Below are positions 1,447 through 59,669 of a DNA stretch of 64,000 nt, piece after piece (positions within the stretch are counted from its first letter, which is position 1; every line of letters begins with the position of its first letter). The position numbers were made by a program, and so were the translations under genes. The stretch is from sequence record LC592711.1; one strand, given 5' to 3'. The notes under the pieces were generated by a model. The model ran no database searches and had not been told where the DNA came from. It saw only the letters and a program-made list of their open reading frames with translations.

Positions 1447-3597
1447 TCAATACGTATCGTAGATCATTCGCGTGTTTTTCTTGTTGCTCATGAAGATGCC
1501 CATGGTTTCCAAGATGTGGTAGTAAGCACCACAGCAATCTCGCACAATCTTGCGTGCGTTCGAACCAATCAGGATCTCATCCGGAATGCCAGACAGCTGG
1601 ATGATACTGACAGGAACGTAAATCGTTGTCATGTACTTACGACCGATGCGAGTACATTCGTCTTGAATATCCTTCACGAGATCCTTGTTCTGAATCTGAT
1701 CCAGATAGACTTGCCAATCCGACACGTTACCGATTTCCAGAGAAACCTTCAACGACGTATAGGGCGGCTCATCGACCATGCCATAGATCTTGCCAAACGT
1801 ACGGTTCCAGAAAGTATGGTTCCAGTACGGTGTGCGATCTGCATCTTTGATTTTGTACGCATCCGCCTTCTTCAGGTGAGCAGCGCGGAAGTATTCGGTA
1901 TTACCCGACTTCACGTCTTCATAGATCGACCATTCTTTCTCAGCGACCATGTCGACGATGTCGTTCAGGTTAAGACCTTTACCATCCACCACAGCTTTCA
2001 TGGATTCCAGCAGGAAGTCTTTCACTTCTGTCACAATCGCGCCAGGTGTAGCCGACGAGATCATGTTTGCTCCCTTTAGTTCCAGGTCAGGCTTACGGAA
2101 TACGTTACCTTCCTGTGCTGTCTTCATGGCGTAGTAATGCTTGGCCATCGAAGTCGGGCAGAAGATCTTGAACTTGTACTCGTTCTTCATCTGCACGTCG
2201 AACAGACGATCCGGATGGACGCCATAGTTCGCAGACATCATTGCATGCAGGTGAGATGACGTTTGTGCGGCGAGATACACCACGACGTCAGAAGTCGATT
2301 CCATTTCGTCCGTGAAACCGATTGTGCCGTAAACACGACCAACCCATTCCTGAACGGTAAACAGAGTCGAGTCAGTATCGCCACCGAGAACGGAACGACG
2401 AAGACTGGTCGGGAAGTTGCCCGTGGATGCAGGCATGTTGCCCGTGAGCCAGAAAGCATCGATCAACGGCTGCACTGAGCACAGCGTATTGTTGATGTTC
2501 TTGGCATTGGTTGCGAGTACGCCGTAGTTGTGCGGACTTTCTTTCAGAATTTCCTTCGGCTTTTTACCAACCGAGAAAGAACGACAGATCTGACGCGACA
2601 GGTTAACGGTATCTTCCGAAACTGTCTTGAGAACGAACTGAGCTTCATCTACCGGCATCGATTCGTCGATGAAACGCGACAACTGATTCAGCAGACCAAC
2701 CACAAAACCAGTATTGTGCTTGTACAGATGGTAGAAATCACCAACATACACGAATGCCGCACGCTCAAGCGGCTTCATCGTTTCGACGAAATCCCACACA
2801 GGTTGCATGTGCTGGTTCGACTGGAAGTACAGCTGACGGCTACGCTCGATACAATCGTTGACGTCTTGCACTGTCGGCCAATGCAACTGGAACATCTTCA
2901 TCGCTTCTTCGACCTTCTCCAGATCGGTGATAGCGCAGATCGACACGAGGTTGTTCAGGATCGTGTCGCGGTCCATGTAGTGGCGATTGCCTTCGATGAA
3001 CTTTTCGTTGTTTGCGTTTCCGTATGCGGTCGTGTTACGGCAGTTTGTCGTAAGCGACGAATGCGAAGTCGGATTAAATAGAGCCGTCGACGGAGTGAGT
3101 GATGCCCCGGAGAGCGAGTTATTCGTGGTCTTTGCATTGTTCTGTCCGAGATCCTTAAATACATAGAGAACCATGTCCCCTGCATTCTTGGCATCGAACA
3201 TCTGATCTTTGAGCACCGAACGCTTAACGATGTTATCCATCGTGTAAAGCGACAGCAGCGATTGCCGAACATCCGGCGAGCAATACGACGTAAACGTCGG
3301 CGACATCGATTCGTTGTTCTCGAATACGTCTGCGAGATAACGCGACATCGTGGTTTCTTTGAGAACGCGGTCTTCGAAATTCTCACGATGGAGATAGCGC
3401 ACCATCGGATCCCGGAATTCAAACAGACCACCGGGTTTCATGTTCTTGACGACGAATTCTCGTGCAGCTTGGATCGTGATTCCCTTTCTCTTGGAGAGAA
3501 AGAGCGATGCCTGGTCTACATAACCGTTGAGCACTTTCGTGTCACGGCGATAGTCCTCTCGTTCTTTACGGAAAGTTACAGGTCGCAACTGATGCAT
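1447..3597 (-). CDS. Split family-B DNA polymerase subunit (phiKZ gp50-like)
   Basis: Motif B-like 'AKTTNNSLSGA' and motif C 'GDTDS'; no exonuclease or motif A recognised, as expected for a split enzyme. RBS AAGGA before ATG 3597 (716 aa). Confidence 0.85.
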   Translation of the reverse strand: MHQLRPVTFRKEREDYRRDTKVLNGYVDQASLFLSKRKGITIQAAREFVVKNMKPGGLFEFRDPMVRYLHRENFEDRVLKETTMSRYLADVFENNESMSPTFTSYCSPDVRQSLLSLYTMDNIVKRSVLKDQMFDAKNAGDMVLYVFKDLGQNNAKTTNNSLSGASLTPSTALFNPTSHSSLTTNCRNTTAYGNANNEKFIEGNRHYMDRDTILNNLVSICAITDLEKVEEAMKMFQLHWPTVQDVNDCIERSRQLYFQSNQHMQPVWDFVETMKPLERAAFVYVGDFYHLYKHNTGFVVGLLNQLSRFIDESMPVDEAQFVLKTVSEDTVNLSRQICRSFSVGKKPKEILKESPHNYGVLATNAKNINNTLCSVQPLIDAFWLTGNMPASTGNFPTSLRRSVLGGDTDSTLFTVQEWVGRVYGTIGFTDEMESTSDVVVYLAAQTSSHLHAMMSANYGVHPDRLFDVQMKNEYKFKIFCPTSMAKHYYAMKTAQEGNVFRKPDLELKGANMISSATPGAIVTEVKDFLLESMKAVVDGKGLNLNDIVDMVAEKEWSIYEDVKSGNTEYFRAAHLKKADAYKIKDADRTPYWNHTFWNRTFGKIYGMVDEPPYTSLKVSLEIGNVSDWQVYLDQIQNKDLVKDIQDECTRIGRKYMTTIYVPVSIIQLSGIPDEILIGSNARKIVRDCCGAYYHILETMGIFMSNKKNTRMIYDTY

Positions 3598-3637
3598 TGT
3601 TTCCGTTCCTTGGGTTGACAGCAAAAAAAAGATAACA

Positions 3638-3672
3638 CCCCGTAAAGCAAATCCGAAGATCACTTTACGGGG
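3638..3672 (-). terminator. Stem-loop with U-tract just upstream of the DNA polymerase start
   Basis: ccccgtaaag...ctttacgggg with an A8 run at 3623-3630 (U-tract on the minus strand). Confidence 0.5.
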
Positions 3673-3708
3673 CGGATTCAAACTAGATGGTGACCTAACA
3701 AAAAAATA

Positions 3709-4134
3709 TCAGGTCGTGGTCGTATTGCCATTGAAGGTGATCTGGAAGTTGACGAAGCCAGCTTGCTTGAGCATCGTCGACAGGCGTACCAGATCCGACG
3801 TCGAGACGTTCGGAATGACGATACCGGCAACGCTGACCTGAACTTCCGAGATGGAAGTCGGGTCAATCCAGGGCTCACCGATGATGGTGATCGTGCCATC
3901 GATTTTCTTGATCCGGTAGTAGTTATACTGACGCGGATCGTTGGGGAAACCCGTCGGCAAGTTCCCGGACGAGACAACAGCTGCATGCACGGGCTGGATG
4001 TCGCCTTGGAGCATGACTGCAGTTTCGAACGGGAAGTAGCCGAGGATCTCGACACGTTTGAAAGAAGTACCCAGGACATTCGGAGCATACGTCTCGAAGT
4101 CATAGATCTTCTTATTGTCCATCGCTTGTGACAT
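3709..4134 (-). CDS. Conserved phiKZ-like protein adjacent to the DNA polymerase (gp49-like), SH3-like beta-rich
   Basis: 'YDFETYAPNVLG...YNYYRIKKIDG...IGEPWIDPTSI' resembles the core gene next to the polymerase in this family; synteny. Confidence 0.6.
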   Translation of the reverse strand: MSQAMDNKKIYDFETYAPNVLGTSFKRVEILGYFPFETAVMLQGDIQPVHAAVVSSGNLPTGFPNDPRQYNYYRIKKIDGTITIIGEPWIDPTSISEVQVSVAGIVIPNVSTSDLVRLSTMLKQAGFVNFQITFNGNTTTT

Positions 4135-4146
4135 GGATGTTCACCT

Positions 4147-4527
4147 TTAATCGTCGAACGGAGTTTCGAATCTTTTCACCACAATAGAGCGGTTATTCCG
4201 GTTCGACTCAGGTGCGTACTCGAATCCATCGCCAGCGTACAGACCGTGCGCCCGTAATTGCGACGCAATGTTTTTTACGAGAAGAAAAAAAGATTCCAGG
4301 AACCGTTGGAGGAATCTTGGATCGGGCTCCAGATGTTCACGATAGAAATTCCCCAACTTGGACAGTTGAGGTTCCTCGTGAACATCTTCGAGCTCGAAGA
4401 TGATGACGTCGAACACCATCAGGACGACGTCACTCAAAACGTATTCAGGTAGTTTCTTCTCCGGACCCACATCGCGACAGAATTCACGAAGCGCGTGTCG
4501 GAGGTCGACAATTATCCGCTCAGACAT
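4147..4527 (-). CDS. Hypothetical protein (paralogue-array member 6)
   Basis: 126 aa, GAAGG RBS, overlaps the upstream gene. Confidence 0.75.
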   Translation of the reverse strand: MSERIIVDLRHALREFCRDVGPEKKLPEYVLSDVVLMVFDVIIFELEDVHEEPQLSKLGNFYREHLEPDPRFLQRFLESFFLLVKNIASQLRAHGLYAGDGFEYAPESNRNNRSIVVKRFETPFDD

Positions 4528-4940
4528 TCCCCTTCACCATGTTGGTCGATTTCATGTTCAGAAAAGATCTTGATGATCATATCCATACCCACAAACCCTT
4601 CAAATTTCAAAATGCTTGGAACTTGTGAGTTCAGAAGTTCAAGCTCTTTCATGTAACTAAAAAGTGTCGTCACGAATTCGTACGCCATCTGGGCAACGTC
4701 ATCCGTGTACAACTCTTCGAGGATCCCCGTATCCGTGAGTTCCACGGCCATCTTCATCGTAGCTTCCAGGAGCTCGATATGTTGATTGGTCTTAGCGTTC
4801 TGAGAATGATGCAACCACATCACCATCGTGATCAGCATCTGCATCAGAACAAACTGATGTTCATCCTCTCGGAAATATTCCTCGAAGACGCTCTTCCATT
4901 TCTGGATCCGATCTTTCGTCGGAATAATGAATTTTTGCAT
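4512..4940 (-). CDS. Hypothetical protein (paralogue-array member 5)
   Basis: 142 aa, packed operon, acidic. Confidence 0.75.
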   Translation of the reverse strand: MQKFIIPTKDRIQKWKSVFEEYFREDEHQFVLMQMLITMVMWLHHSQNAKTNQHIELLEATMKMAVELTDTGILEELYTDDVAQMAYEFVTTLFSYMKELELLNSQVPSILKFEGFVGMDMIIKIFSEHEIDQHGEGECLSG

Positions 4941-4995
4941 GTTAACGATTCGCCGATAGGTGTCTCATAACCATTGCCGAACGATCGATGTATTT

Positions 4996-5352
4996 TTATT
5001 CGATCACCTCAAACTTCAACGACATAAAACTGTCGCTGGGAATGAAGCTAACGTGCTGATGAATGAATCCTGCACGCTGCAACTCGCGGAGAATGTGCGC
5101 ACGGATCCTCATAAAGAAATCCATGATTCGCATCTGCTGCCCAACAGTAAATGGCTTGACTTCCTGATGACCCTGAAACCAGTAGTCACCATAAACCATT
5201 CTCCTGATGTACGCGCGATCTTCTTTATCTCCACGTATGCCTTCACACAGGTTGTCTAGGGTCTCGGAATAATCGATTAATCCAAACTCCAGTGTAAAGA
5301 ATTCCCGGAACATTTTCAGAATTTGGATCTTATCGATCAAGACCAGTTTCAT
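4996..5352 (-). CDS. Hypothetical protein (paralogue-array member 4)
   Basis: ATG 5352 overlaps the upstream stop (translational coupling) and follows a GAGG RBS; 118 aa. Confidence 0.7.
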   Translation of the reverse strand: MKLVLIDKIQILKMFREFFTLEFGLIDYSETLDNLCEGIRGDKEDRAYIRRMVYGDYWFQGHQEVKPFTVGQQMRIMDFFMRIRAHILRELQRAGFIHQHVSFIPSDSFMSLKFEVIE

Positions 5353-5939
5353 CAGAACCTCAATCGCATTTTCAAAGCGTGAGCGCTGGACCACTGAAGG
5401 CTGCGTTCATCGATGGCATAATCGCCGTGCACATCGCGAATTAACGACATCGTCGCGCGAACCATATCGTCTATGATTGCACCGACTTTTGTTGCTTCAC
5501 GAATCTCGTACTCTTCAACCGAGTAATTCCGATTGAAGGTGGCGTTGGAGAAATAGGTTGCTTCTTCTTCCTTTTTCGTCCACTCAGCCATCGCATCGTT
5601 CATCTCCCGAAAGATCTGAACGTCACGTGCACTTATATCTACTTCTCGCTGGGTCGCCATCACACACGACTCGATAAAACCCTCCAGTTCATGCGGATAG
5701 AAATACAACAGATCCTCGGCAGGACCCACCTTTTCGAATACGTGACGGAAATCCACCAGGTAGGTTCGCTCACCCATGTAACGATCCTCCTTTAGCACTT
5801 CAATCATCCTCGGGTATTGCGTTGTGAAAAGATTCCGATTACGGAACGACTCATCTCTCAAAGCCAGCCCCGGTTTCGTTTCCACCTGGATCAGCCTAGA
5901 AGAAGTAGCCTCGTTGTTCTTCGTAACGTTCTGGAACAT
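5352..5939 (-). CDS. Hypothetical protein (paralogue-array member 3)
   Basis: 195 aa, coupled to its neighbours. Confidence 0.75.
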   Translation of the reverse strand: MFQNVTKNNEATSSRLIQVETKPGLALRDESFRNRNLFTTQYPRMIEVLKEDRYMGERTYLVDFRHVFEKVGPAEDLLYFYPHELEGFIESCVMATQREVDISARDVQIFREMNDAMAEWTKKEEEATYFSNATFNRNYSVEEYEIREATKVGAIIDDMVRATMSLIRDVHGDYAIDERSLQWSSAHALKMRLRF

Positions 5940-7077: not shown

Positions 7078-8073
7078 TTAGAACACCAGGCCGTTGCTGG
7101 CCTTCTTGGTATTGCCTTCCGACAGCTTGTTGCGAACGACACGCGCGCCTTCACGTGTTTCGTAATCCGCCAACTGCTTGCGCAGGTTCTTCATGACGCC
7201 GTCGAGGAAACCATCAGCCACCACGAAGTGCAGCGGGAACTTCATGTCCTTGTCTGCATCCGGATGAACCGGAACGCCGACGCGCTGGAACTCGACCGGA
7301 CGATCGAGCTTCGTGTTGTTCAGGTCGTTGTTCAACGTTGCCACCGTCATCAGGTTGGCATCCGAACCGAGGTTCAGCTTTTCCCGATGAATCGACAGCA
7401 CGCCGACCTGCGGCGCAAACGACGTGACATTTTCCGGATGGAAAACGTTGATCAGGTCGCGAGCATCCAGGTTCTTGTTCTGGCCGCTGAACAGAACGGT
7501 CAAACACGATACTGCCAGATGCACCTTCGCGTCGACTTCTTCGATCGTGCCGTCGATGCCGTTTTGCAGATACTGCAACACGATCGACTTCTCGCGCGTT
7601 TCGACGATCCCTTCGTAGGACTCCATCGTACCGATGGTGTTCAGGATGTAGTTCTTGGTGTCGTCACCGCCGATCGAGAACACGATTGCAGTCTTGCCCT
7701 GAGCGAGTGCTTCCGATGCGATCGACGGACCCATCACCGAACCAGAACCACCGGTCGTGGAATGGATGATGATGTTGACGTCGGCCAGCGGGAATTTCTG
7801 GAGCATTTCGCCGGTGTACTTGATGATGTCCGGGCCATTGTAGCGGCGAACACCGCCCGAGCCGTTTGCTTCCGGCAGCTGATAGAAGTGCTCCGACGGC
7901 ACACCGAAGGTAGATGCTTTGGAGGTGTCCATGTACACCGGATCGAGTTCTGCATAGCCGGTATTGCGATTGCCGCGTTCCGGTTCGAAATACTTGCCGA
8001 TTCCGATGCCTGCGCCGCCGCAAGCGTAAATGCGAAGTTTGCCCAGCGTGTTGGTATTGTTCAGTTCCGACAT
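7078..8073 (-). CDS. phuZ: PhuZ phage tubulin (spindle protein)
   Basis: Tubulin/FtsZ motifs 'YACGGAGIGIG', 'MDTS', 'GSGG', T4-loop 'STTGGSGS', T7-like 'NLDARDLIN'; jumbo-phage context. Confidence 0.92.
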   Translation of the reverse strand: MSELNNTNTLGKLRIYACGGAGIGIGKYFEPERGNRNTGYAELDPVYMDTSKASTFGVPSEHFYQLPEANGSGGVRRYNGPDIIKYTGEMLQKFPLADVNIIIHSTTGGSGSVMGPSIASEALAQGKTAIVFSIGGDDTKNYILNTIGTMESYEGIVETREKSIVLQYLQNGIDGTIEEVDAKVHLAVSCLTVLFSGQNKNLDARDLINVFHPENVTSFAPQVGVLSIHREKLNLGSDANLMTVATLNNDLNNTKLDRPVEFQRVGVPVHPDADKDMKFPLHFVVADGFLDGVMKNLRKQLADYETREGARVVRNKLSEGNTKKASNGLVF

Positions 8074-8143: not shown

Positions 8144-8159
8144 GTAATATATCGCTGAA
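8144..8159 (-). promoter_or_regulatory. Early (virion RNAP) promoter motif upstream of phuZ
   Basis: Minus strand TTCAGCGATATATTAC contains the phiKZ early consensus TATATTAC. Confidence 0.7.
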
Positions 8160-8182: not shown

Positions 8183-8995
8183 ATGCATTCAGGATCGGCC
8201 GTTGAGAAGGCCATCACGGAGATCAAGTACATCATCCCTGAGGAGATTCTTGATCTCGTCTTTCTCAAGAAAGCTTACTTCTTTCGTGACAGGCCGACCA
8301 ACCTGGATCGAGAAATAATCAAGAAGGTCATCGCACCACGCGTGATGGTCGACTGCAGTCTCATCGGAGGTACAGACTATATCGTACCCCTGATGGATAT
8401 TTATCGCGAGCTTACCGAGGAGTGGATGGCTGTTTACCGCATCCCGAAAGAGTTCACCGATAACCGCAGCGTCATGTCGATTCTCGGCGTGATGTATATC
8501 AATCCGTACATGGTATCGGCGCCCGCGGGTAACAACATTACTGGCTGGTCGCACATCATGGCGACTACTCAGGCAGTGCTGGAAGCGATGTCTCCGATTC
8601 CGAACTTCAGTTCGTCGGATGTTTCGCTTGAAGGTGAGAACGTGATTGTCATTCGTGACGCTCGAGTTCTGCCCTCCTTCAGTTATGCTCGTGTCATTCT
8701 GTCTTACGACGAGTACATGAGCAACATCAATCCGCGTTCGTATCTCGCGTTTGCCAAGATGTGTGAACTCGCAGTCAAGTCATACATCTGGAAGAACCGC
8801 GTGATTCCTCTGGATCGTGGTGAACTGACTGCTGGCGTGACACTTGGCGCCATCAAGGAAGTCATCGACGAGTACAAGGATGCGGAACAGATGTACCAGG
8901 ATTATCGCAAAGATACCATGCGAAAAGTCCTGTTGATGAACGACGAAGGACGCAAACGTCGTCATCTCACGCGCATTATTGGCGGCTATAAATAA
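8183..8995 (+). CDS. Conserved phiKZ-like virion structural protein
   Basis: 270 aa; 'AITEIKYIIPEEILDLVF', 'LAVKSYIWKN...GVTLGAIKEVIDEYKDAEQMY' recall a conserved family protein; divergent from phuZ. Confidence 0.6.
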   Translation: MHSGSAVEKAITEIKYIIPEEILDLVFLKKAYFFRDRPTNLDREIIKKVIAPRVMVDCSLIGGTDYIVPLMDIYRELTEEWMAVYRIPKEFTDNRSVMSILGVMYINPYMVSAPAGNNITGWSHIMATTQAVLEAMSPIPNFSSSDVSLEGENVIVIRDARVLPSFSYARVILSYDEYMSNINPRSYLAFAKMCELAVKSYIWKNRVIPLDRGELTAGVTLGAIKEVIDEYKDAEQMYQDYRKDTMRKVLLMNDEGRKRRHLTRIIGGYK

Positions 8996-9037: not shown

Positions 9038-9523
9038 TTATGCTGTCGGCGAGGAATCCGTGTAATCGTGATGCTTGAAGCCGTTGAGTCTGTCTTCGGC
9101 CTTGGCATCTTTGTACTTGTCGTTATTGATCACGACCGTCACGTGAGTATCGTCAAGCCAACCTTCACGACTGACTTCGGAAATGTTTTTCAACATTTCG
9201 TCACTACCGTCGGGAAGTTCACCTGCGACATGTTTGTTCTGGACATCTTGCCAGATGACGTGGTTGTAGCCCAAAAAGAAAATAGCCCACATCGCTGCAA
9301 GACATAACCACGCTCCCGCATCACGAGGCATGTGATACACGAAGAATGCTGCGGAAACGACGAACAGCCAGAACGTCATCATGATCGCGAAGACCCAGTA
9401 ACCGATTGCCTGCTGAGACCAGTTGAAGAGGATCGAATCCTCCTGATACATCAGCTGGTTCACCATCATGAAAAACGTGAACGCGAATAACAGCCAAAAC
9501 AGAACACCCACAGCGGTATACAT
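9038..9523 (-). CDS. Membrane protein with about 3 TM helices
   Basis: Hydrophobic segments at about aa 4-22, 40-62 and 70-88; GAGG RBS. Confidence 0.75.
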   Translation of the reverse strand: MYTAVGVLFWLLFAFTFFMMVNQLMYQEDSILFNWSQQAIGYWVFAIMMTFWLFVVSAAFFVYHMPRDAGAWLCLAAMWAIFFLGYNHVIWQDVQNKHVAGELPDGSDEMLKNISEVSREGWLDDTHVTVVINNDKYKDAKAEDRLNGFKHHDYTDSSPTA

Positions 9524-9626
9524 GGCCTACCTCACTTGTTATTAAAAAACGACCAAAAAAAATCCCAGGATAAACTCTGGGATTGAAAAGCCCATCTCGG
9601 GGAGACCGGATGGGCTGGGCTACTGT

Positions 9627-9911
9627 TTAAACCGCTTCGAGCTTGAGGCTGTTACGCAGCACCACACCATTCATGGCACGTTCGATAGCTGCTTCAGCTT
9701 TCTTTGCTGCGAAGTCGGCTTCGCGCATTGCCATGCGTTGTGCGTGGACATATTCGCGCACTTGCTTTTCTTCGCGAACCGTGAGGTTCTGGCGTTCGAG
9801 GCGATTGTTGACTTCGTCCCATTCGACTTCTTCAAACTTCTTGCCATCCATGTACTTGTCCGACAGGAAGAGGCAGAATTCGAGGACGGTGACTTGATAG
9901 AGGTTGTTCAT
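9627..9911 (-). CDS. Hypothetical helical protein
   Basis: 94 aa, CAGGAG RBS, coiled-coil-like C-half. Confidence 0.7.
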   Translation of the reverse strand: MNNLYQVTVLEFCLFLSDKYMDGKKFEEVEWDEVNNRLERQNLTVREEKQVREYVHAQRMAMREADFAAKKAEAAIERAMNGVVLRNSLKLEAV

Positions 9912-9957
9912 GATGATGCTCCTGAGAAAGGGAAAATTACACAGACGGTAGAGGAAG

Positions 9958-10104
9958 TTACTTGGCCAGCTTGTCGGTCATGTACGCGACCAAGGGGACG
10001 ACGACCAGCAGAAGGAAGCCGACGTACAGAACGACGTCTTTCCGTTTTGCTTTGACCGTATCGTTGCTGCGGTTTGCTGCTGCGAGAAATTGTTGCTTAG
10101 TCAT
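9958..10104 (-). CDS. Small single-TM membrane protein (48 aa, not in ORF track)
   Basis: MTKQQFLAAANRSNDTVKAKRKDVVLYVGFLLLVVVPLVAYMTDKLAK*; AGGA RBS; fills the gap between two genes. Confidence 0.7.
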   Translation of the reverse strand: MTKQQFLAAANRSNDTVKAKRKDVVLYVGFLLLVVVPLVAYMTDKLAK

Positions 10105-10148
10105 GACTTATTCCTGTTGTTTGACTGTACTGAATTTTGGTTAATCGA

Positions 10149-10610
10149 TTACTGCAGGGGAACACGCTTGCGGAAGGTATCGAACTGGATGACGACGTAT
10201 CCGTTTTCGATCGTCACACTCTCCACCCTCGCATTGCAGGTTCCGAAATCTTTGGCTTGGCGGACATCGCCATTTGCCAGGAACCAGTAAAGCTGATAGT
10301 CCGTTTTGCATTCGAACCCTTGATTGCCTGAGATCAGGATCAGGGGCTGATTGCTGTACGTACCATGCCAGGCGACTTTGATGTCGTCGAAGTTCTCTTC
10401 CATGTCAGTGACATAGTCGCGATACTTCATGTACCAGGTACGAGCGTCCGTATCCTGGTAGAACTGCACCGTGTCCACCGTTTTGCGGAGAACCGGTTTT
10501 GCATCCGCGTCACCTATACCACCCAACACCAGAACTGCGATCGCTCCAACGATCGCCAGGATCCAGAACTTCCAGTTATCGTTGACATAGTTGCGAACTA
10601 CTTGTGCCAT
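10149..10610 (-). CDS. N-terminally membrane-anchored or exported protein
   Basis: 'WKFWILAIVGAIAVLVLGGIG' TM/signal followed by a beta-rich domain; GGAG RBS. Confidence 0.75.
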   Translation of the reverse strand: MAQVVRNYVNDNWKFWILAIVGAIAVLVLGGIGDADAKPVLRKTVDTVQFYQDTDARTWYMKYRDYVTDMEENFDDIKVAWHGTYSNQPLILISGNQGFECKTDYQLYWFLANGDVRQAKDFGTCNARVESVTIENGYVVIQFDTFRKRVPLQ

Positions 10611-10828: not shown

Positions 10829-10879
10829 GATACGCCTCCGTTGAAAAGAATACAAAGTTCTTTATCCAACTTCACCGCA

Positions 10880-10895
10880 GTTATATGTTTCTGAA
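10880..10895 (-). promoter_or_regulatory. Early promoter motif
   Basis: Minus strand TTCAGAAACATATAAC, identical over 16 nt to 13116-13131. Confidence 0.7.
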
Positions 10896-10929
10896 TTATT
10901 CTGGGATTCGATATTTGACGGCATAAGCC

Positions 10930-10953
10930 GGGGATGGGTTTTACCCCATCCCC
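10930..10953 (-). terminator. Hairpin after the AAA ATPase gene, followed by TTATG
   Basis: ggggatggg-ttttac-cccatcccc; CATAA at 10922-10926. Confidence 0.6.
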
Positions 10954-10958
10954 TAGCT

Positions 10959-12266
10959 TTACGCGACCAGTTTCAAACGTTTTGCATTCGAGCGACGACA
11001 GAGCTCCGTCAGGAATGCATCCGGATCTTCCGGGTTTTCCTTGAATGCGAGTTCTACTTCGCAACCAGGTAGCAACCATTCTTCCGAATGACACGACAGA
11101 ATAAACCGTCGTACTTCTTCATCTGTGAGATCGTACATCAGCGCCATGTAAGGCTCGATCTCTTTGCTCGTGAGTTCGCCGATCAGGTAATCCTTATCGA
11201 CCCGACCTGCGCGCTTGATAGCTTCATCGAGATCTTCCGGATGATTGGTCGTCATGATGACGATCAGGTTATCCAATCCGATTACTCCATCAAACGCATT
11301 GAGTACACCAGACATGGTGAGGAAGCTCAGGTCCGCTACTGCCTCGACCAGTTCCTTTTTCTTTTTGCGATCCTTCACTGCACTGCCTGACTGATCGACA
11401 TCCTCAATGAGAACGATCGAACCAGGTTTGATGGTCGCCAATGCTTCCATGAGCGAAGCATTTGAATGCTGCGACAGATCGAGCAAATACAGATCTTTCT
11501 TGAAACGAGCAGAAAGCAGCTTCGACAGCGTCGTCTTGCCAGTACCCGGGGGTCCGTAAAAGAGGAACGAAATTTTGTATGTCAGTCCTTTTTTACGATA
11601 CCACTCTCGACGATTTGAGAATTCTTCAATCCTTCCCAAGATGTCGGCCTTCAGGTCTGCGTTCATGCAAAACGTTTCGATGTCTCGCATGGGAACCTTA
11701 CCAACCTGCTCCCAGCTTTTATCGCCACCGTACTTGTGGATGAATACTTCGTCGGAAGCACCTCGCTTTTCATTGAAGAGATCGACCAGTTGCAGGAATG
11801 AACTTTGATTCCATCCAAACGTGCGGATGGTGATTTCTTCTTTCTGTTTTTCAGATCCGCCAGATTCCAGAGAACCTTTATCGAACCAGAAGAACTTTCG
11901 TTTGTACCAGAAAACATGAACGCCTTTGCCGATACCCAAGCGGTAAGGCTTGAATACGGTTTCATCCGAAAACATGTCTTCCTTGTATTGCCGGAACATG
12001 AAGAAGCTACGACTGAATTTCGCGTAGCCGGACATCATGAACCATTTGTCAAACATGTTGTACGCATCTGCATTGCCGTCCCAACCAGCATTGTTCAGAC
12101 GCATCGTAACTGTCGTGTAGCGAACGACCAGATCCCAGAACTTCTTGGGTAGGTCCTTCAGGTAAAACATGATACCGCCAACCAACGGCAGTACCAGCGT
12201 CGCTAAGAGAGGGTTAGCTTTCGTTGCTGCATCGTAGTGGCCAAAGAGCCCATAGATCCAGTCCAT
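10959..12266 (-). CDS. BCS1-like membrane-anchored AAA+ ATPase
   Basis: Walker A GPPGTGKT, Walker B IVLIED, 'MSGVLNAFDG', SRH 'MTTNHPEDLDEAIKRAGRVD', BCS1-type pre-Walker 'EEF...REWYRKKGLTYK'; N-terminal TM 'LLATLVLPLVGGIMFYL'. Start at ATG 12266 (GGGGA RBS). Confidence 0.8.
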   Translation of the reverse strand: MDWIYGLFGHYDAATKANPLLATLVLPLVGGIMFYLKDLPKKFWDLVVRYTTVTMRLNNAGWDGNADAYNMFDKWFMMSGYAKFSRSFFMFRQYKEDMFSDETVFKPYRLGIGKGVHVFWYKRKFFWFDKGSLESGGSEKQKEEITIRTFGWNQSSFLQLVDLFNEKRGASDEVFIHKYGGDKSWEQVGKVPMRDIETFCMNADLKADILGRIEEFSNRREWYRKKGLTYKISFLFYGPPGTGKTTLSKLLSARFKKDLYLLDLSQHSNASLMEALATIKPGSIVLIEDVDQSGSAVKDRKKKKELVEAVADLSFLTMSGVLNAFDGVIGLDNLIVIMTTNHPEDLDEAIKRAGRVDKDYLIGELTSKEIEPYMALMYDLTDEEVRRFILSCHSEEWLLPGCEVELAFKENPEDPDAFLTELCRRSNAKRLKLVA

Positions 12267-12345
12267 GTTGTTATTCCCCGAAAGAGTATTGTCAAAATAA
12301 ACGTTGGCCAAATAAAAAAAGATTCAAACCTAGGCCGACAGAGAT

Positions 12346-12373
12346 CCTAGTACCTCCTCACGGAGGTACTAGG
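12346..12373 (-). terminator. 12-bp hairpin between 12384-13058 and the AAA gene
   Basis: cctagtacctcc-tcac-ggaggtactagg. Confidence 0.6.
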
Positions 12374-13058: not shown

Positions 13059-13115
13059 GGATGTAACTCCTTGTGGTACAACATTTTAAAAGGTTTACAG
13101 CGGAAACTCACAATC

Positions 13116-13131
13116 GTTATATGTTTCTGAA
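13116..13131 (-). promoter_or_regulatory. Early promoter motif
   Basis: Minus strand TTCAGAAACATATAAC, 58 nt upstream of GTG 13058. Confidence 0.7.
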
Positions 13132-13299
13132 ACAATCTAGAGTTCCAACCTTTCAAAGAATCAAAGAGCATAGCTTTGAAAGACCGAAACGCCCTTTCGG
13201 ACGTCTCGGTTCTCTCTGGGGGGATGAATGTGGTTGTGTATCCCTCCAGATCATGGAGGGATCATAGTTTCTTTTTATACGCCTTCCACAGGCGTATCA

Positions 13300-13445
13300 C
13301 TTTTTTCTTTTCTTTCTTTCAAAAACTTTAGACTTATTATTCTTATTATTGTAAATACGTTAGTATTTACAATACTAACGTTTATAACTAATTCTAAAAT
13401 TCTCTCTACAAGGTTCTGGTCACATTTAGAAAAATATATGTTTAT
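13300..13445. other. Strongly AT-rich intergenic tract with overlapping inverted repeats (origin or regulatory candidate)
   Basis: T-runs and TTATTAT repeats; 12-bp IR at 13347-13374 overlaps an 11-bp IR at 13357-13381. Confidence 0.5.
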
Positions 13446-13542
13446 GCCTGTTAAGGCAGCAAAACTGTCCGGTAAAAATTCGGCAAGAAGCACAGATCAT
13501 CTGACATCCGTTCCACTATCAAACGCAAAGGACGAAACGAAC

Positions 13543-18525: not shown

Positions 18526-18558
18526 AGAGGAATCCTAGCACAGGGTCATAAGGTTAGT

Positions 18559-18586
18559 GACTGACTGGGCTTTCGCCCAGTCAGTC
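18559..18586 (-). terminator. 12-bp hairpin followed by TTATG (late-promoter core) upstream of terL
   Basis: gactgactgggc-tttc-gcccagtcagtc; CATAA at 18547-18551. Confidence 0.65.
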
Positions 18587-18596
18587 TATCGCTTAA

Positions 18597-22928: not shown

Positions 22929-22953
22929 TTTTCGACGCCATAAAAAGAGGTTT

Positions 22954-22984
22954 CCCTACCCACCGGGATTGCCGGCAGGTAGGG
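22954..22984 (-). terminator. Imperfect hairpin followed by TTATG
   Basis: ccctacc...ccgg...ccgg...ggtaggg; CATAA at 22939-22943. Confidence 0.5.
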
Positions 22985-22997
22985 TATCGAGCTTGTC

Positions 22998-30489: not shown

Positions 30490-30505
30490 GTAATATGTGG
30501 TTGAA
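30490..30505 (-). promoter_or_regulatory. Early promoter motif
   Basis: Minus strand TTCAACCACATATTAC. Confidence 0.6.
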
Positions 30506-39998: not shown

Positions 39999-42900
39999 AT
40001 GGCGTCTAAAAAGAAACGCGGCGGGCGCGATGATTTCGATTTCGATAGCGACTTGGACTTTGACATTCCTGACTTCGGGGGCGATAACCCCGAAGCCACG
40101 AGTAAGAGTCGTAAACCGATTTCTGTTGGCCTTAAGTCAGCAGCGGCAGGGTTTGGCAAGACGTTCGCCAATGAGGCACGTCTGCGTAAAACTCTGACGA
40201 AATCACTGCCCAAAGAGTACGAAGAACCGATCTCGAAAGCATTCGAGATCAAAGATGGGTTTCGGGATCTATACAATACCAGTTCGTCCCAAGCCAGCGA
40301 AATCGTTCGTGAGACCAAACGTTCAGTCGGGCGGATCACGAGAAACCTGGAGTCTGCACTTCCCAAAAAGCTGGCTGAAAAGCTCAAAGCGTGGGGCGAC
40401 TCTGCTGATTCGGATACCGTAGGTAACCTGTCGAAAAGTGAAGTAGAGCAAGGCACGATCGATTCGGCCTTTGCATCCATCTTCGCCCAGACTCAGCAGG
40501 CTCAGGCTGATAACGAAAAGAAGCGCGACGCACGTCAGGTCATTCAGGACCAGATCGATCAAAAGCGTCATAAGGACATGACGTCTATCCTGGGGTCGAT
40601 TGACAACTCGCTTTTGCAGTTGGCAACATTCCAGGATAAGATCCAGACCAACTACATGAAGAAGTCGTTGGAGCTTCAGTTCCGTTCGTACTTTGTACAG
40701 AACGACATGCTGGCGCTTCAGACGAAGTTCTTTGACGAATTCAAGAAAGACCTTCAGGCGATCACGAAGAACACAGGGCTTCCTGATTACGTCAAGAAGG
40801 CGCCGAAAGAAGCTCTCATGGAGCTCATGCGGCAAAAGACCTTCGATTCGCTTTCGAACACCATTTCCAAAAAGCGTAACCAGTGGCTCTCCGGCGTTTT
40901 CAAGAAAGCGCAGGGTAAGATCTCCGAGACACTCGGTAACGTCAAGGACGGCCTGGGAATGGTTCTCGACGGGGTTGAAACCGGCTCCAGTATGTATGGT
41001 TCTGGTTTCGGTCCGTCGGGTGAAGAACTTGTCGGCGATCTCGCTGGCGGTTTCGCGGGGAACAAAGCACAAGACTGGTTGGCTAAGAAGATTCGGGCCC
41101 AGATGGTCAAGAATCCGAAAGCAGTCAAGTTCGGGAACAAAGCCAATCAAGTCTTATCAAATCTGCCGCAGTGGATGGGCAACCAGCTGGAAAACGGCAA
41201 GTACGCTGACAAGATTCCTGAATGGCTGAAGGATATCCTCAAGCCCGATACGGAGTCCTCTGGCGTCAATCTGAGCCGTGAAGTCGATCTCGATCGTGCA
41301 GCACGTTGGTCGGATAAGAATTCGCGTTCTCTGAATGTCGTGATTCCGGAACTGCTCTCGAAGATCCATCACGAGCTCTACGTTACCCGCACGGGCGACG
41401 TAAGCGCTAAGCCTTTGGCGTACGACTACGAAAAGGGCAAGTTCGTCACATCGAAAGAACGTCAAGCTCAACTAGCGGACACGATTGTTTCGAACCGTAC
41501 GAAAGAATCGACGAAGCACCAGGTCGACAACATCTTCAAGGAAATCGATCCGAAGGGTGAGATCGATCCGAAAACTCGTAAGGCGATTGCAGCACGCATT
41601 TATGGTGCTAACAAACGCAATGTCTATTTCGACAAAGATAACATCCTGTCGCATGAAGTACTGGGCGATCACGATGATGCACGTCGCAAGTTCGAAGAGT
41701 ATCTCGAAAACGACGAGCAGGGCCACAAAGAACGACGTCTCACGAACATGTTCGGTCGTGTCGGCGGAGACAATGGTGAAGTCAAGGATGTGATTCAGGA
41801 TCTCATTGACCAAGGGCGCCACGGCGAACTGGCCGATATGGGATTGCTGGATCTGAAGACTGGCCGCATCAACATGGAAAAAGTTCGCGAGATGGAACTG
41901 AGCCATGTTGGTAAAACTGTGAAGTCTGCAAATGGTAACATCTTCTCGGGCGGTAACGTCCAGATGTTTGCCAAGGGCGGTGCATTCACGAACAAGATCG
42001 TACGTCGTCCTACCGCTTTCCCGATGAAGGGTGGAAAGACCGGTATCATGGGCGAAGCAGGTCCCGAAGCGATCATGCCTTTGTCGCGGGACAAGGATGG
42101 TCGTCTGGGCGTTAAAGTCCAGAAGGGCAAAACGGAACAAGCCGTTGAGGAAATCCTCGGCATCCTGAAACGCTTCGAAGCGAAAGGCTTTGGTGGCGGT
42201 ATGATGGATCCTGAAATGCTCGAAGCTTATCTGTCTGGCAAGATGGATGATGCCAAGGGTTATTTCGGTAAGGGCGGTGCAGCCCTCAAGAAGCTGGGTC
42301 TGGGTGCGGCAGGTTCCATTTGGGGCGGCGCCAAGAACTCCTATCGTCGCAGCCGCATCATGGCTCGTAAAGCCAAGAAGATGGTTTTCGGCGGTGGTGC
42401 CTCCGCTCTTGACTGGCTGGGTAAACAGAAAGACAAATTCGATCTGTATATCGGTAACGAAGTCGAGCCTCGTCTGTCAAAGATGAAACTCGAAGCTGGC
42501 CGATACGTCGATGCGAAGACCGGCAAGGTCATCGAGAAGTACGAAGATATCAAAGGCGACATTAAAGATCTTGATACGGATGAGATCGTTCTCAGGGCCA
42601 CTGAGATCAAGGACGGTATTCTCAAAAACTTCGAGACAGGTAAGTCGGTGTTGTTGCGACTGACTGGCTGGGGTAAATCTGCGATCAAGCAAGCATACGA
42701 AAAAACCAAAGCGACCATTGCGAAAGCGACGGGTCTTTCCAAGCTTCTCTCTAGCACGGCTTACAACAGCGTGAAGAAAGCTTATGAATTTTACACGGAC
42801 GGGCCACAAGACGTGTATCTGAAGGACCAGTACGAAACACCGGTTCTTCTCAAGCGCATCATGGCGCAAGGATTGTATTTCGATAAAGCAACTCTCGATC

Positions 42901-45900
42901 CGATCTCGAAGGTGAGTCAGATCAAGGGTCCTGTTGTCGATAACGAAGAAAATGTCCTTATCACCAAGGAAGACTTGGCTAACGGCCTGTACGACAAGGA
43001 AGGTAAGGAAATCAAGACCGGCTTTGACAAGATTGCATCCTTCGTAGGTGCGTCTATCAAGGGCGCGATTGGAACCTACAAGAAGCTGTTGGGTAAGGGT
43101 AAAGACATGGGGATGCGAGCAATGGCTTGGCTCAAGAATCTCTTTGGCTTTGATTCGCCCTTCACGGTCTTCAGCAGCCGTACGAATGACATTCTGACGG
43201 CAATGTATGCCATGCTCAATGATCGCTTGCCTGGCGAGCGCTCACCTGACCTGGATTCCATGATTGGCAAGGGTTCGTCTGGTTCTACCAAGGACGCCGT
43301 CAATAAAGCCGGTAAGGCTGCGGGAGCTTTCAAAGAAGGCTTCATGAAACGCTGGAATAAGGGCAAGGATCAGGCACAGGCTAAAGCCGATGAACTCAAG
43401 GCGCGTTTGCCGGGAGACATCGAGAATGCCAAACAGAAAGCACGCGACCTCCATGGTCAGGCTTCTGACAAACTGAACGAATGGAAAGACGAGCATTGGG
43501 ATAAGGCAGAGCAGCAGGTTCGTGAAAAGCTTGGTCGAGGGAAGGACCGAGTTGTAGACGGACTGCATGCTGTTGTCGACACCCTACGCGCACGTCTGCC
43601 CGAACAGAAAGCCAAGGTTGAAGGCGATAGCAACGGCGACGGTGTTCGCGATGGTTCCATCGATGACCTCCGCGCCAAACGTGCTAAAGCCAAGGAAGAA
43701 AAAGAGAAGGAAAAGAAGGAAGCCGAACAGTCTGCTGAAAAGGGCAGTACCAAGGGCGCCTGGGCGGCATTGTCCGCATTCTTCAAAAAGAATAAAGGCG
43801 AGGACGAAGAGAAGGGTGGTCACTCTCTCCTCGAAGACGCCGAGGATCTCGTAGGCGGCGGTAATGGCGGCAAGGCTGAGAAAGCCGGTAAGGGCCTGAA
43901 GAAGGCTAGCCGTTGGGAAAGGATGATGCCTAAGGGCAAAGGCTTGGGTTCCAAGCTGCTGCGTGGTGGCATGAAAGCAATCGGTGGTATTGGCAAGCTC
44001 GGCCTGAAGTTTGGCGGCGCTCTCCTGGGCGGTGGTTTGCTTAGCGCGGAAACGCTGCTGGGCGGGTTGTCGCTCGTGGGTTCTGCTCTAGGCATGACTG
44101 CCACTGCAATCGGTGCAATCATTTCGTCTCCCGTTACCGTTCCGCTCCTGGTAGCTGCTGGTGTTGGTGCCGCAGGGTACTTCGCCTATAAGTGGCTTAC
44201 CAAGCCGGATCCTCAACCAATCGAAAAGGTACGACTCGTGCAGTATGGCTTTAAAGCCAACGACATCGAAGCGTACAAGAAGATGAAGAGTCTGGAGCAA
44301 CAACTTGCCCCAGCAGTAGTCTTCAAGGGTGAGAAGGCAGAATTCGATCCCAAGAAAGTTGATCTGAAGCAGGCGATGAAGCTTTACGGCTTGAACCCGG
44401 AAAGCAAGGACGATGCGGAGAAGTTCGTGTCGTGGTTCGCTGATCGCTTCCGTCCGGTCTACCTCCAACACAGAGCGTTGATCGTGACATCGAAGTCTCC
44501 GAAGCCTCTGGAAGACGTTGACGATAACAAGCCTGATTTCAAGCAGTCCTATCTGGATCAGTGTTTGTTCCCGGGTGGTCATTACAACGTCACGACCAAT
44601 CCCTTCAAGGGCAAGGACTATCTGCCTACCGCGCAGTATTCGGTGGAACAGCAGATCAAGGCCGCGAAGGAAGAAGTCGAGAAAGAAGGCTCCAAGAAAC
44701 AAGATACCAACAAGGCTGATGCTCCGAAGCCTGCTGGAGGTGTAGCTGCCGCCGCTCTCGCTAAAAACGAAGCGGATAAGAAAGCACACGAAGCTGATCA
44801 AAAGAAGAATGATACGACCTTGACTCCTGCCCAGAAAGATCCGAGGCACGATTCCGACAAGGTCATGGCGCAAAATCGCCTGGCTGCTGCAACCGTTGGT
44901 GCTAACGAGGGCCCCGGAGGCCCCGGCCGTCAACCTGGAGATCCGATTACCGGACCTTCTGGCCCTGACGGATCTGCTAAACCGGCAAAGTCCAAACCTG
45001 GCGTTAAGCCGATGAGCGGTGCCGCAGCACTGGTGAAAGAAACACTTCTGAAAGACATGCCGAAGTACGGGATTACTTCCCCGAACCAGCAAGCTGCCCT
45101 CCTGGGCAATATCGAACACGAATCCGGCTTCATGCCGATTTCTGAGAATCTGAATTACAAACCCACCCAGCTGATGAAGTTGTGGCCTAACCGTTTCCCT
45201 GATTCGGGTAAGGCTCAGCAAGTCGCGTCGCAAGGCCCTCAAGGCATTGCGAACAACATCTACGGCGGTCGGATGGGCAACACGGATGCCAACGATGGTT
45301 GGGATTACCGTGGCCGCGGCCCTCTCCAGATTACTGGTAAGAGTAACTACGCGGCTGTCGGTAAGGCGATGGGCAAAGACATCGTCAATGATCCGGACAA
45401 GCTTATCACCGATCCTCAGACCGCAGCTGACTCTGCTCTGGCCTACTGGAAACTCAACCCTGCGCTCGGTAAAAACGCAGACGCTGGGAATTTCCAGAAA
45501 GTTCGACAGATGATCAACGGTGGTGGTATCGGAGCGGATGACGCAAATGCACGCGTGCAGAGTTATCTGGACAAAATCAAGAATGGCGAACTGCAAGTAG
45601 GTGGTTCGTCGTCTGGCCCTGGCGGTACGGTCACTCCTACGGGAACGGTCGATTCGCCTAAGCCTTCTACAGCTAACGTGGCGTCGAATCCGAATTCGGG
45701 TCCGGCACCTGATGCTTACCGACAAGCGTCCAAGGCTGAACCGACTGCGACGACTCCGTCTCAATTGGTTAGCTCTCCGCGACCGACGTATGATCCGAGC
45801 TCTGGTGGTGGTGCTGCCATGAGTTCGAGCTCCGCGCCTTCGCAGAACGCTTACGTACAACGCAATACCCAACTGAATGCTGGTGACTCCCTTGACATCA

Positions 45901-51136: not shown

Positions 51137-51152
51137 GTAATATATGTCTGAG
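51137..51152 (-). promoter_or_regulatory. Early promoter motif
   Basis: Minus strand CTCAGACATATATTAC contains TATATTAC. Confidence 0.7.
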
Positions 51153-59333: not shown

Positions 59334-59669
59334 TTATCGACACTGTTCTACCCGCTGACGAGTCTTGGTGATCACGTACAGGAGTTGGTCGATGTATTTG
59401 TTTTGCTTGTCCATGTAGTCTTGCAAGAAGGCATCCATGGTTCCGTTTTTGATATCGTCATCGGTGAAGCTTTGAAACTTCTTCCGATCGAACTGAGGAC
59501 GACGTGTGTAACGAGGCATGTTCTCCTGTTCACACAAGTCAACCATCATTCTATTCTGTTTGGTAATATATTCCTGATTTTTGTCTATCTGTGGAGGATC
59601 AGGTTGTTTCGGTTCTTGCGCGCATGCAGCCAGGAACGCGAAGAGAACCCCCGTCAAAATTTTCTTCAT
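59334..59669 (-). CDS. Lipoprotein, probable o-spanin
   Basis: MKKILTGVLFAFLAA|C lipobox, Pro-rich linker, 111 aa; downstream of a TM plus coiled-coil gene. Confidence 0.6.
   Translation of the reverse strand: MKKILTGVLFAFLAACAQEPKQPDPPQIDKNQEYITKQNRMMVDLCEQENMPRYTRRPQFDRKKFQSFTDDDIKNGTMDAFLQDYMDKQNKYIDQLLYVITKTRQRVEQCR
59563..59578 (-). promoter_or_regulatory. Early promoter motif embedded in the lipoprotein CDS, upstream of RNase H
   Basis: Minus strand ATCAGGAATATATTAC matches the TCAG-nn-A-Y-ATAT-W-AC consensus. Confidence 0.5.

Follow-up and report, generated by a model that had tools for sequence, protein, structure and literature searches.

Folded proteins leave the bacterial cytoplasm by the Tat system, which is also the bacterial route of the Rieske protein and which was replaced by Bcs1 in mitochondria. 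The Tat proteins are unrelated to Bcs1, use the proton-motive force instead of ATP and depend on signal peptides, and are thus a functional analogue only. Bcs1, for its part, is the established non-Tat example of the transport of a folded protein through an energy-coupling membrane, and all studies of it concern mitochondria. Namely, as a heptamer, it takes the folded Rieske domain across the membrane, starting on the matrix side (PDB titles; Iyer et al. 2021, PMC7824862). In jumbo phages, too, BCS1 orthologues have been reported: Iyer, Anantharaman, Krishnan, Burroughs and Aravind (Viruses 2021, PMC7824862) described them for several phages from all three groups and suggested that they capture folded proteins and translocate them while heads are assembled close to the membrane. 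Here, we analyse one gene of this kind, FLC6_gp18 (gp18 in the following), in the first 64 kb of sequence record LC592711.1, a stretch of 64,000 nucleotides to which we refer as the window. The record is that of FLC6, a Burkholderia jumbo phage of 227 kb and of the genus Chiangmaivirus, whose near relatives are the Ralstonia phages RSF1 and the FLC4 series and the Burkholderia phage SURPRISE13, and the coding sequence is deposited in GenBank as "hypothetical protein". A 1353-nt segment with the gene agrees with this record at 100% identity and in its coordinates.

Our analysis raises this entry to a confident family assignment; the kind of system it belongs to is not a new one. A first-pass annotation of this DNA had treated the finding as new, whereas both the jumbo-phage BCS1 orthologues and the idea of a folded-protein translocase were published in 2021; what is more, several GenBank records already name homologues "mitochondrial chaperone BCS1" or similar. 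In other words, gp18 is an unannotated member of a phage family that has been described before. The same annotation had placed the gene in a jumbo phage, and rightly so. Judged by its gene content, FLC6 is phiKZ-like, because the window encodes both a PhuZ tubulin and split RNA polymerase subunits (the latter at 33.9-40 kb and 53 kb). As to function, we tentatively propose, by analogy and with a confidence somewhat short of even, that gp18 is an accessory, early, inner-membrane ring of the Bcs1 type, which would serve to move or assemble folded proteins there.

Family, fold and predicted membrane anchor

The assignment of gp18 to the Bcs1 family of AAA+ ATPases is very secure, as judged by sequence profiles and a structural model. 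The BCS1_N profile of Pfam matches with 48.0 bits against a gathering cut-off of 28.1 (E 1.8e-12, profile positions 1-181 of 182), and the matched domain sits directly N-terminal to the ATPase, as expected of a member of the Bcs1 family. Over residues 1-432, gp18 matches PHROG 7485 (E 1.8e-149), into which phiKZ gp286 falls as well (E 8.9e-184). In a sequence search against all solved structures, the top matches are yeast Bcs1 (6sh3, E 1.1e-29) and mouse Bcs1 (E 5e-24), with Cdc48 and p97 following at E 1e-19 or weaker. Finally, an AlphaFold2 monomer model built on 48 homologues, with a mean predicted local distance difference test (pLDDT) score of 86.2, was compared with the PDB using Foldseek, and the first seventeen chains retrieved were all Bcs1, the closest fold being 8tp1_A (E 2.5e-29, 430 aligned columns, TM-score 0.70). 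The next-best full-length fold match is YjoB of B. subtilis (7w42, E 1.5e-16), and generic AAA proteins come behind it. These profiles, solved-structure sequences and predicted fold back the BCS1-like family and the order of anchor, BCS1_N and AAA which the first-pass annotation had read from the letters. The three sequence strings it quoted are all present in the open reading frame (ORF), and both domains for which it had suggested a Pfam search were matched. Clustering with FtsH or SpoVK, or the lack of a BCS1_N fold, which it had named as contrary outcomes, did not occur, since the BCS1_N profile is matched and Bcs1 provides the top relatives in sequence and in fold.

Other AAA families were also tried and set aside. 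A Pfam scan of gp18 detected no peptidase domain as in FtsH, and the NCBIfam models of FtsH give it 32-36 bits against cut-offs of 600-1008. The NCBIfam IteA model scores 27.8 bits against a cut-off of 510. Matches to IetA, the ATPase of the IetAS defence system in PADLOC, are partial and cover approximately residues 190-260.

Table 1. Features of gp18 and its surroundings (positions in the window; residues are those of gp18)
Feature	Positions	Strand	Remarks
FLC6_gp18	10959..12266	-	435-aa ORF from ATG; stop codon 10959-10961
Predicted single membrane-spanning helix, residues 18-36	12159..12215	-	Hydropathy; helix 19-36 in model
BCS1_N (Bcs1-specific) domain, residues 29-198	11673..12182	-	Pfam PF08740; mixed beta/alpha fold in model
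AAA ATPase core, residues 235-362	11181..11564	-	Pfam PF00004, E 2.9e-16
Walker A GPPGTGKT, residues 238-245	11532..11555	-	G238, G241, G243, K244, T245 invariant
Walker B strand, end IEDVD, residues 283-291	11394..11420	-	E288, D289 invariant
LTMSGVLNAFDG, residues 316-327	11286..11321	-	Aligned to yeast Bcs1 VTFSGLLNALDG; N323, G327 invariant
Sensor 1 and second region of homology (TTN...RAGRVD), residues 339-357	11196..11252	-	N341, R352, R355 invariant
Helical lid, residues 365-435	10962..11174	-	Four helices in AlphaFold2 model
Hairpin between gp19 and gp18	12346..12373	-	12-bp stem, 4-nt loop; T-run ~25 nt further
gp19, 224 aa	12384..13058	-	Directly upstream of gp18; homologues at the same place in RSF1, L014, L015
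Early-type promoter-like motif TCAGAAACATATAAC	13116..13130	-	58 nt upstream of gp19 start
Second motif copy	10880..10894	-	Upstream of gp17, first gene of the downstream membrane-protein cluster
TCAGNNNYATATWAC sites	8144-8158, 10880-10894, 13116-13130, 30490-30504, 51137-51151, 59563-59577	-	Pattern search
gp16, gp15, gp14, gp13	9038..10610	-	Strongly hydrophobic segments in three of the four: one at the N-terminus of gp16, one in gp15, several in gp13

The likeness to mitochondrial Bcs1/BCS1L (yeast 6sh3, mouse 6uko, 8tp1) extends from the order of anchor, Bcs1-specific domain and AAA module through the predicted topology and the full-length fold to the details of the active site, namely Walker A and B, sensor 1, two arginines and an LTxSGxLNAxDG stretch, which reads (V/L)T(F/M)SGxLNAxDG in the family. 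Judging by the residues that are invariant across 48 relatives (Table 1), the catalytic residues of gp18 are all intact and belong to a classical-clade AAA core. That said, gp18 differs from Bcs1 in that the two share only 22-23% identity in structural alignments, in that it belongs to a separate phage clade, and in its lid: the Pfam family AAA_lid_BCS1 (PF25426) gives no match in gp18 at E <= 1. Among the homologues listed, this lid was seen solely in the more distant ones, and those of them that were placed in the tree belong to its bacterial and eukaryotic clade. Relatives differ in the length of the loop that leads from Walker B to the LTxSGxLNAxDG stretch; in particular, phiKZ gp286 (locus L002, 4887-6413) and PhiPA3 gp347 (locus L004, 4893-6419) carry approximately 85 extra residues in this loop of the AAA domain.

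In most AAA unfoldases that thread polypeptides, strand 2 is joined to the next helix by a pore loop of the aromatic-hydrophobic-glycine type. In the gp18 family, column counts over positions 256-275 and the alignment with yeast Bcs1 show that this pore loop 1 is absent; the position reads D/N-L-S...T/S-N/D...L, like Bcs1. The absence of an aromatic pore loop from the phage Bcs1-like family is an observation new to this work, and it makes the threading of unfolded chains by gp18 unlikely.

Where the protein begins matters for what follows. The start is likely the ATG at 12266, because the homologues share an MDW, MEW or MQW N-terminus and a GGGGA stretch resembling a Shine-Dalgarno sequence precedes this codon. 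A longer version from a TTG at 12311, offered by the ORF finder, is unlikely, as it has neither the start found in homologues nor the Shine-Dalgarno property. Starting at the ATG, residues 18-36 have a Kyte-Doolittle 19-residue mean of 1.72. Is this segment a family property? We surveyed 195 relatives of 380-560 aa, drawn from two database searches, and found that their most hydrophobic N-terminal window has a median value of 1.72 and starts at a median position of 19; it reaches at least 1.6 in 141 of them and at least 1.2 in 191. The net charge is -0.13 over the 15 residues before the anchor and +2.37 over the 15 after it, with the charge after exceeding the charge before in 182 of the 195. 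Following the positive-inside rule, such a bias would put the N-terminus out and the ATPase in the cytoplasm. The retention of the anchor and of this N-out/C-in bias across about 190 relatives is, again, newly described here. The predicted arrangement of gp18 is consequently a single helix in the host inner membrane with a short N-terminus outside and the rest cytoplasmic, a topology equivalent to that of Bcs1, whose ATPase faces the matrix.

Could gp18 rather be a membrane-tethered remodeller, that is, a chaperone, disassembly or counter-defence factor working at the inner membrane face in the manner of YjoB? The full-length structural similarity to YjoB, which includes the N-terminal domain, would fit such a role, as would the weak partial matches to IetA and, as discussed below, a non-essential, non-core and patchily distributed gene of the sort typical of host-interaction functions. 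However, the IetA matches span just some 60 residues around Walker A. The fold match to YjoB is weaker than that to Bcs1, and YjoB is described as soluble, whereas the gp18 family has a conserved hydrophobic N-terminal segment. This conserved anchor, along with the Bcs1-specific domain, points to work at or through the membrane, and we regard a remodeller of this kind as unlikely, if still the strongest competitor of the Bcs1-type ring.

Relatives in phages, bacteria and eukaryotes

Searching with gp18 by tblastn gave matches in 168 phage records, and the homologues include those of phiKZ (PHIKZ286), PhiPA3 and Noxifer, as well as of Erwinia, Serratia, Klebsiella, Salmonella and Vibrio jumbo phages. 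With the N-terminal 200 residues as the query, 351 cluster representatives out of 1.8 billion were retrieved at E <= 1e-3; among the 150 such matches listed, most are approximately 400-470 aa long and match at their N-terminus. The architecture is also found in phages that are not phiKZ-like, namely in gp235 of the Caulobacter siphovirus CcrColossus (BCS1_N at 82.8 bits, plus AAA) and in p094 of KASIA, a Shewanella phage of 91 kb (AAA and BCS1_N, the latter with 45 bits, and a strong hydrophobic N-terminal segment). Altogether, a few hundred phage and bacterial relatives retain the anchor, the Bcs1-specific domain and the catalytic site. A scan keyed on full-length alignments returned a further 67 loci from IMG/VR, which we set aside because the scan responded to generic Walker A and B motifs and the loci held mostly other AAA proteins.

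Cellular homologues occur in bacteria; a contig of 799 kb carries one, and so does a genome of the Casimicrobiaceae. The bacterial BCS1_N plus AAA proteins P0063 and P0065 resemble gp18 in architecture and in their hydrophobic N-terminal segment, and are unlike it in their chromosomal, non-phage contexts and in grouping with eukaryotic Bcs1 in the tree. As a side observation, a TROVE (Ro60-like) protein with a faint vWA match is encoded downstream of P0063 in two independent contigs (loci L009, 8001-10771, and L010, 419-3189), which could be a conserved bacterial pair.

The tree itself is a quick maximum-likelihood one of 76 hand-picked rows, rooted at its midpoint without an outgroup and omitting most of the retrieved proteins. 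It splits, with a Shimodaira-Hasegawa-like approximate likelihood ratio test (SH-aLRT) value of 99, into a phage clade of 48 rows, which holds every isolate-phage sequence included, and a second clade of 28 rows with fungal Bcs1 and the bacterial homologues. A phylogeny against Bcs1 had been suggested at the outset, and its outcome is a divided one: gp18 remains a Bcs1-family protein, but within the 76-row tree it lies in the phage clade and does not group with eukaryotic Bcs1. This separation of the phage Bcs1-like proteins from fungal Bcs1 and the bacterial homologues is an addition of our analysis. Note that AAA ATPases labelled 'BCS1' in giant viruses (Medusavirus, Clandestinovirus, Klosneuvirinae) also match gp18 over the full length in predicted structure (E 1e-22 to 1e-30); unlike gp18, these proteins belong to viruses with eukaryotic hosts, and many exceed it in length; they were left out of the tree.

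Probable early timing and proposed function

The gene is the second in a minus-strand run from gp19 to gp13, which starts at a divergent spacer of 484 nt (13059-13542). The octamer TATATTAC, which we take to be the phiKZ promoter octamer, shows no enrichment around phiKZ gp286. A search for it in FLC6 led to a longer motif, noticed by eye in upstream regions and then formalised as TCAGNNNYATATWAC, which has 6 matches in the window, all on the minus strand, against 0.37 expected. Five of them stand upstream of PhuZ (gp11), gp17, gp19, gp34 and gp46, and the sixth lies inside gp57, upstream of gp56; an RTGAR often follows 4 nt after the motif. It recurs at corresponding places in RSF1, where the copy upstream of the gp19 homologue has one change, while in the metagenomic relative L015, in which its conservation is partial, a copy lies directly upstream of the Bcs1-like gene. 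Published early promoters of jumbo phages that encode RNA polymerases have a conserved AT-rich element of approximately 10 nt near -10 that can be found by bioinformatics, and TCAGNNNYATATWAC, as a sequence pattern, fits this description. The early-type motif upstream of the gp19-gp18 pair is likewise an addition of our analysis; its position ahead of gp19, the gene preceding gp18, agrees with the first-pass view that an early-promoter operon lies directly upstream of gp18.

A hairpin (Table 1), possibly a terminator or an attenuator, separates gp19 from gp18 and is found at the same position in RSF1, L014 and L015. The part of the spacer after the hairpin, 12267-12345, is approximately 90% identical between FLC6 and RSF1 and could hold an unrecognised promoter or an element of the 5' untranslated region. 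TATG is the late-promoter core of phiKZ, and none is present in the spacer upstream of gp18. Given this and the early motif upstream of gp19, gp18 is probably transcribed early, either by read-through or from an unrecognised promoter. Elsewhere in the window, a different arrangement, judged by eye, is seen upstream of gp10, gp17, gp25, gp27, gp38, gp43 and gp51, structural genes among them: a terminator-like hairpin is followed within some 5-20 nt by TTATG (for example at 10829-10958, 18526-18596 and 22929-22997), which resembles the TATG late-promoter core of phiKZ.

Published data bear on the timing of the phiKZ homologue. Like gp18, phiKZ gp286 and PhiPA3 gp347 belong to PHROG 7485 and share its domain order, tree clade and early-gene context; apart from their insertion, they differ in an upstream gene, gp285, that is dissimilar to gp19, and in having no membrane-protein neighbours. 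The gp286 messenger RNA is at its maximum at 5-10 min. Namely, in the RNA sequencing data of Gerovac et al. 2025, normalised reads are approximately 3540, 4780, 1560, 960 and 1010 at 5, 10, 15, 20 and 30 min, and 4150, 4390, 2120, 770 and 590 in the second replicate; upon chmA knock-down they remain at 3100-5700. The transcript of the major head protein, unlike that of gp286, climbs to 20-30 min (Gerovac et al. 2025). This bears on the proposal of Iyer et al. 2021 that the ring translocates folded proteins into proheads at the membrane. It has the merit of being a published idea for a family that is widespread in large phages, and the capsids of phiKZ-like phages have indeed been published to assemble at the membrane. 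However, a gp286 transcript that is down 4-7 fold by 20-30 min, just when that of the major head protein is up, speaks against it, as do the early-type motif ahead of gp18, the lack of TATG in its upstream spacer and the dispensability of the gene in phiKZ. The early timing thus disfavours a role in head assembly, at least for phiKZ-like phages, and we hold it to be very unlikely.

What, then, would an early Bcs1-type ring do? As we picture it, gp18 would be anchored in the host inner membrane by its N-terminal helix, with the Bcs1-specific domain and the ATPase in the cytoplasm, and, given the early-type motif in FLC6 and the transcript data of its phiKZ homologue, would be made early in infection. 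By analogy with Bcs1, it would form a ring with a large cavity, and an ATP-driven rearrangement would let a folded domain or a whole folded protein of the cytoplasm enter or cross the membrane, or else would assemble a membrane complex. Carried over to a bacterium, the Bcs1 mechanism would thus mean movement from cytoplasm to periplasm, or insertion or assembly in the inner membrane. The likeliest candidate clients would be phage envelope proteins, for example the small membrane proteins encoded beside gp18, and the role would be an accessory one, not essential for laboratory growth. Rieske protein is unlikely as a general client of the phage family, because many host genera of the phages carrying homologues lack a bc1 complex; to our knowledge, this is the case for the enterobacterial hosts, and phages of Salmonella, Klebsiella, Erwinia and Serratia carry homologues.

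One can go a step further and ask whether phage Bcs1-like rings are ATP-driven, Tat-independent exporters that carry folded phage proteins across the inner membrane within minutes. We consider this broader version unlikely, if far from negligible; in phiKZ-like phages, the same exporter might place proteins across the membrane of the early infection vesicle. If it were true, the bacterial and phage relatives would bear on the origin of mitochondrial Bcs1. In either case, the discovery of clients would show whether the mechanism works in bacteria and what large phages place in or across the membrane early on.

The vesicle also figures in a more specific alternative, in which the early vesicle carries the ring in its membrane and folded proteins are moved by it between cytoplasm and lumen, or in which the ring helps the phage nucleus to form. 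A link of this kind to the early vesicle and to selective import had been drawn in the first-pass annotation, and the data on the phiKZ gene weaken it. Gerovac et al. 2025 class phiKZ 286 as "Non-core genome" in Chimalliviridae and report that its antisense knock-down leaves plaques and colonies unaffected while lowering ChmA ("++"). A phiKZ transposon-sequencing preprint, in which genes without insertions are treated as essential, gives two tables with 20 and 55 insertion sites, respectively, for PHIKZ286, at a density similar to that of the neighbours; since insertions are tolerated, the gene is dispensable. In other words, 286 lies outside the core and nucleus-import set of Chimalliviridae: it is non-core, it tolerates insertions, and the full architecture is found outside the family, in CcrColossus and KASIA. 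Moreover, among the publications searched, neither the core-genome paper nor the vesicle preprint mentions the homologue, and these two and the Avs5/TurboID paper contain no data on the phiKZ gp286 protein. Early expression that continues in infections halted ahead of nucleus formation would fit a vesicle translocase, as would the reduction of ChmA and a predicted N-terminus that would face a lumen of periplasmic-side origin. Given its non-core status, its dispensability in phiKZ and its occurrence in phages of other kinds, a dedicated role of the gene in the vesicle or nucleus is nevertheless unlikely, and we rate it as distinctly less probable than the remodeller considered above. The drop in ChmA keeps open a contributory role.

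Protein-level data on gp286 come from fractionation. PhiKZ286 is among the ATPases that sediment in high-molecular-weight fractions (Gerovac et al. 2024), which we count in favour of a large complex, although such sedimentation does not give the number of subunits. PHIKZ286 also co-fractionates with 70S ribosomes and cross-links to rplL, rplK and rplJ (Fossati et al. 2023). Taken at face value, these two sets of results would suit a factor bound to the GTPase-associated stalk that alters or localises translation, for instance by tethering ribosomes to the membrane. Yet a ring of subunits of some 50-58 kDa, or membrane fragments bearing it, would co-migrate regardless, the proteins of the stalk are flexible as well as abundant, and unrelated proximity labelling also turns up ribosomal proteins. 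The Bcs1 fold gives no hint of ribosome binding, and the supporting data come from phiKZ, so that a ribosome-linked function appears to us improbable, on a par with head assembly. A separate observation is that the start of phiKZ gp286 overlaps the stop of gp285, which is likewise reported to be ribosome-associated.

That said, several points weigh against the Bcs1-type ring that we prefer. The ring model leaves the cross-links of PHIKZ286 to ribosomal stalk proteins unexplained, and the functional data as a whole come from phiKZ gp286, which is approximately 32-41% identical to gp18 over the aligned parts. The hydrophobicity of the gp18 anchor is moderate, not strong, and its topology was derived from hydropathy and charge, which are crude measures. 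In FLC6, the hairpin between gp19 and gp18 could end early transcripts. As for the neighbourhood, a BLASTP comparison of gp10-gp22 with the ORFs near the homologues of phiKZ, PhiPA3, Munch, Phobos and Noxifer matched the ATPase alone, and conservation of the partner gene gp19 stops at the RSF1-like clade. Finally, phiKZ, PhiPA3, Noxifer and KASIA are without a membrane-protein neighbour, and the association with such neighbours, described below, is a hint that is not statistically secure.

Neighbouring genes and other features of the window

The gene upstream, gp19, is kept next to the Bcs1-like gene only within the RSF1-like clade, where its identity drops to 32% and 25% while that of the ATPase holds at 52% and 43%. 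It matches no Pfam or PHROG family, its 15 homologues are all close, and it shows no similarity to phiKZ gp285 (E 0.37). Its AlphaFold2 model has a pLDDT of 57, and Foldseek found no match for it below E 0.38.

Downstream of gp18, membrane-protein genes are clustered, which is also a new observation. The maximal Kyte-Doolittle means are 2.51, 2.65 and 2.42 for gp16, gp15 and gp13; a value of at least 1.9 is reached by 7 of the 62 annotated proteins of the window, that is, by three of the five genes after gp18 against 4 of the 56 others. The corresponding hypergeometric tail, calculated by hand, is approximately 0.009, with the choice of five genes made post hoc. With a more lenient threshold (a 19-residue mean of at least 1.6), 7 of 10 other loci from phages or phage-like elements have at least one hydrophobic segment among the neighbour genes listed, the exceptions being phiKZ, PhiPA3 and Noxifer. 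In CcrColossus, for example, a UPF0114 inner-membrane protein is encoded two genes downstream of the Bcs1-like gene and a lipobox protein, with a lipoprotein-type signal ending in LSGC, three genes downstream (gp237 and gp238; locus L085, 4166-5265).

Several further features were noted in passing. The spacer 13059-13542 between gp19 and gp20 contains a very AT-rich part with palindromes, and two hairpins in it (13240-13262 and 13277-13297) resemble plus-strand terminators, with no plus-strand gene annotated upstream; a small unannotated transcript or ORF is possible there, such as 13073-13267 on the plus strand. The PhuZ tubulin is FLC6_gp11 (7078-8073, minus strand; PHROG 4733, E 6.9e-108), which is likewise deposited as 'hypothetical protein' and has weak Pfam matches to Tubulin and TubZ_C_2. 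Next to it, gp12 (8183-8995, plus strand) is a DUF7484 protein, and it adjoins PhuZ in RSF1, L014 and L015 too. Finally, gp41 (39999-46118, plus strand), a protein of 2039 aa annotated as a lytic transglycosylase, covers the stretch with the highest AT skew (+0.15) and GC skew (+0.15) of the window.

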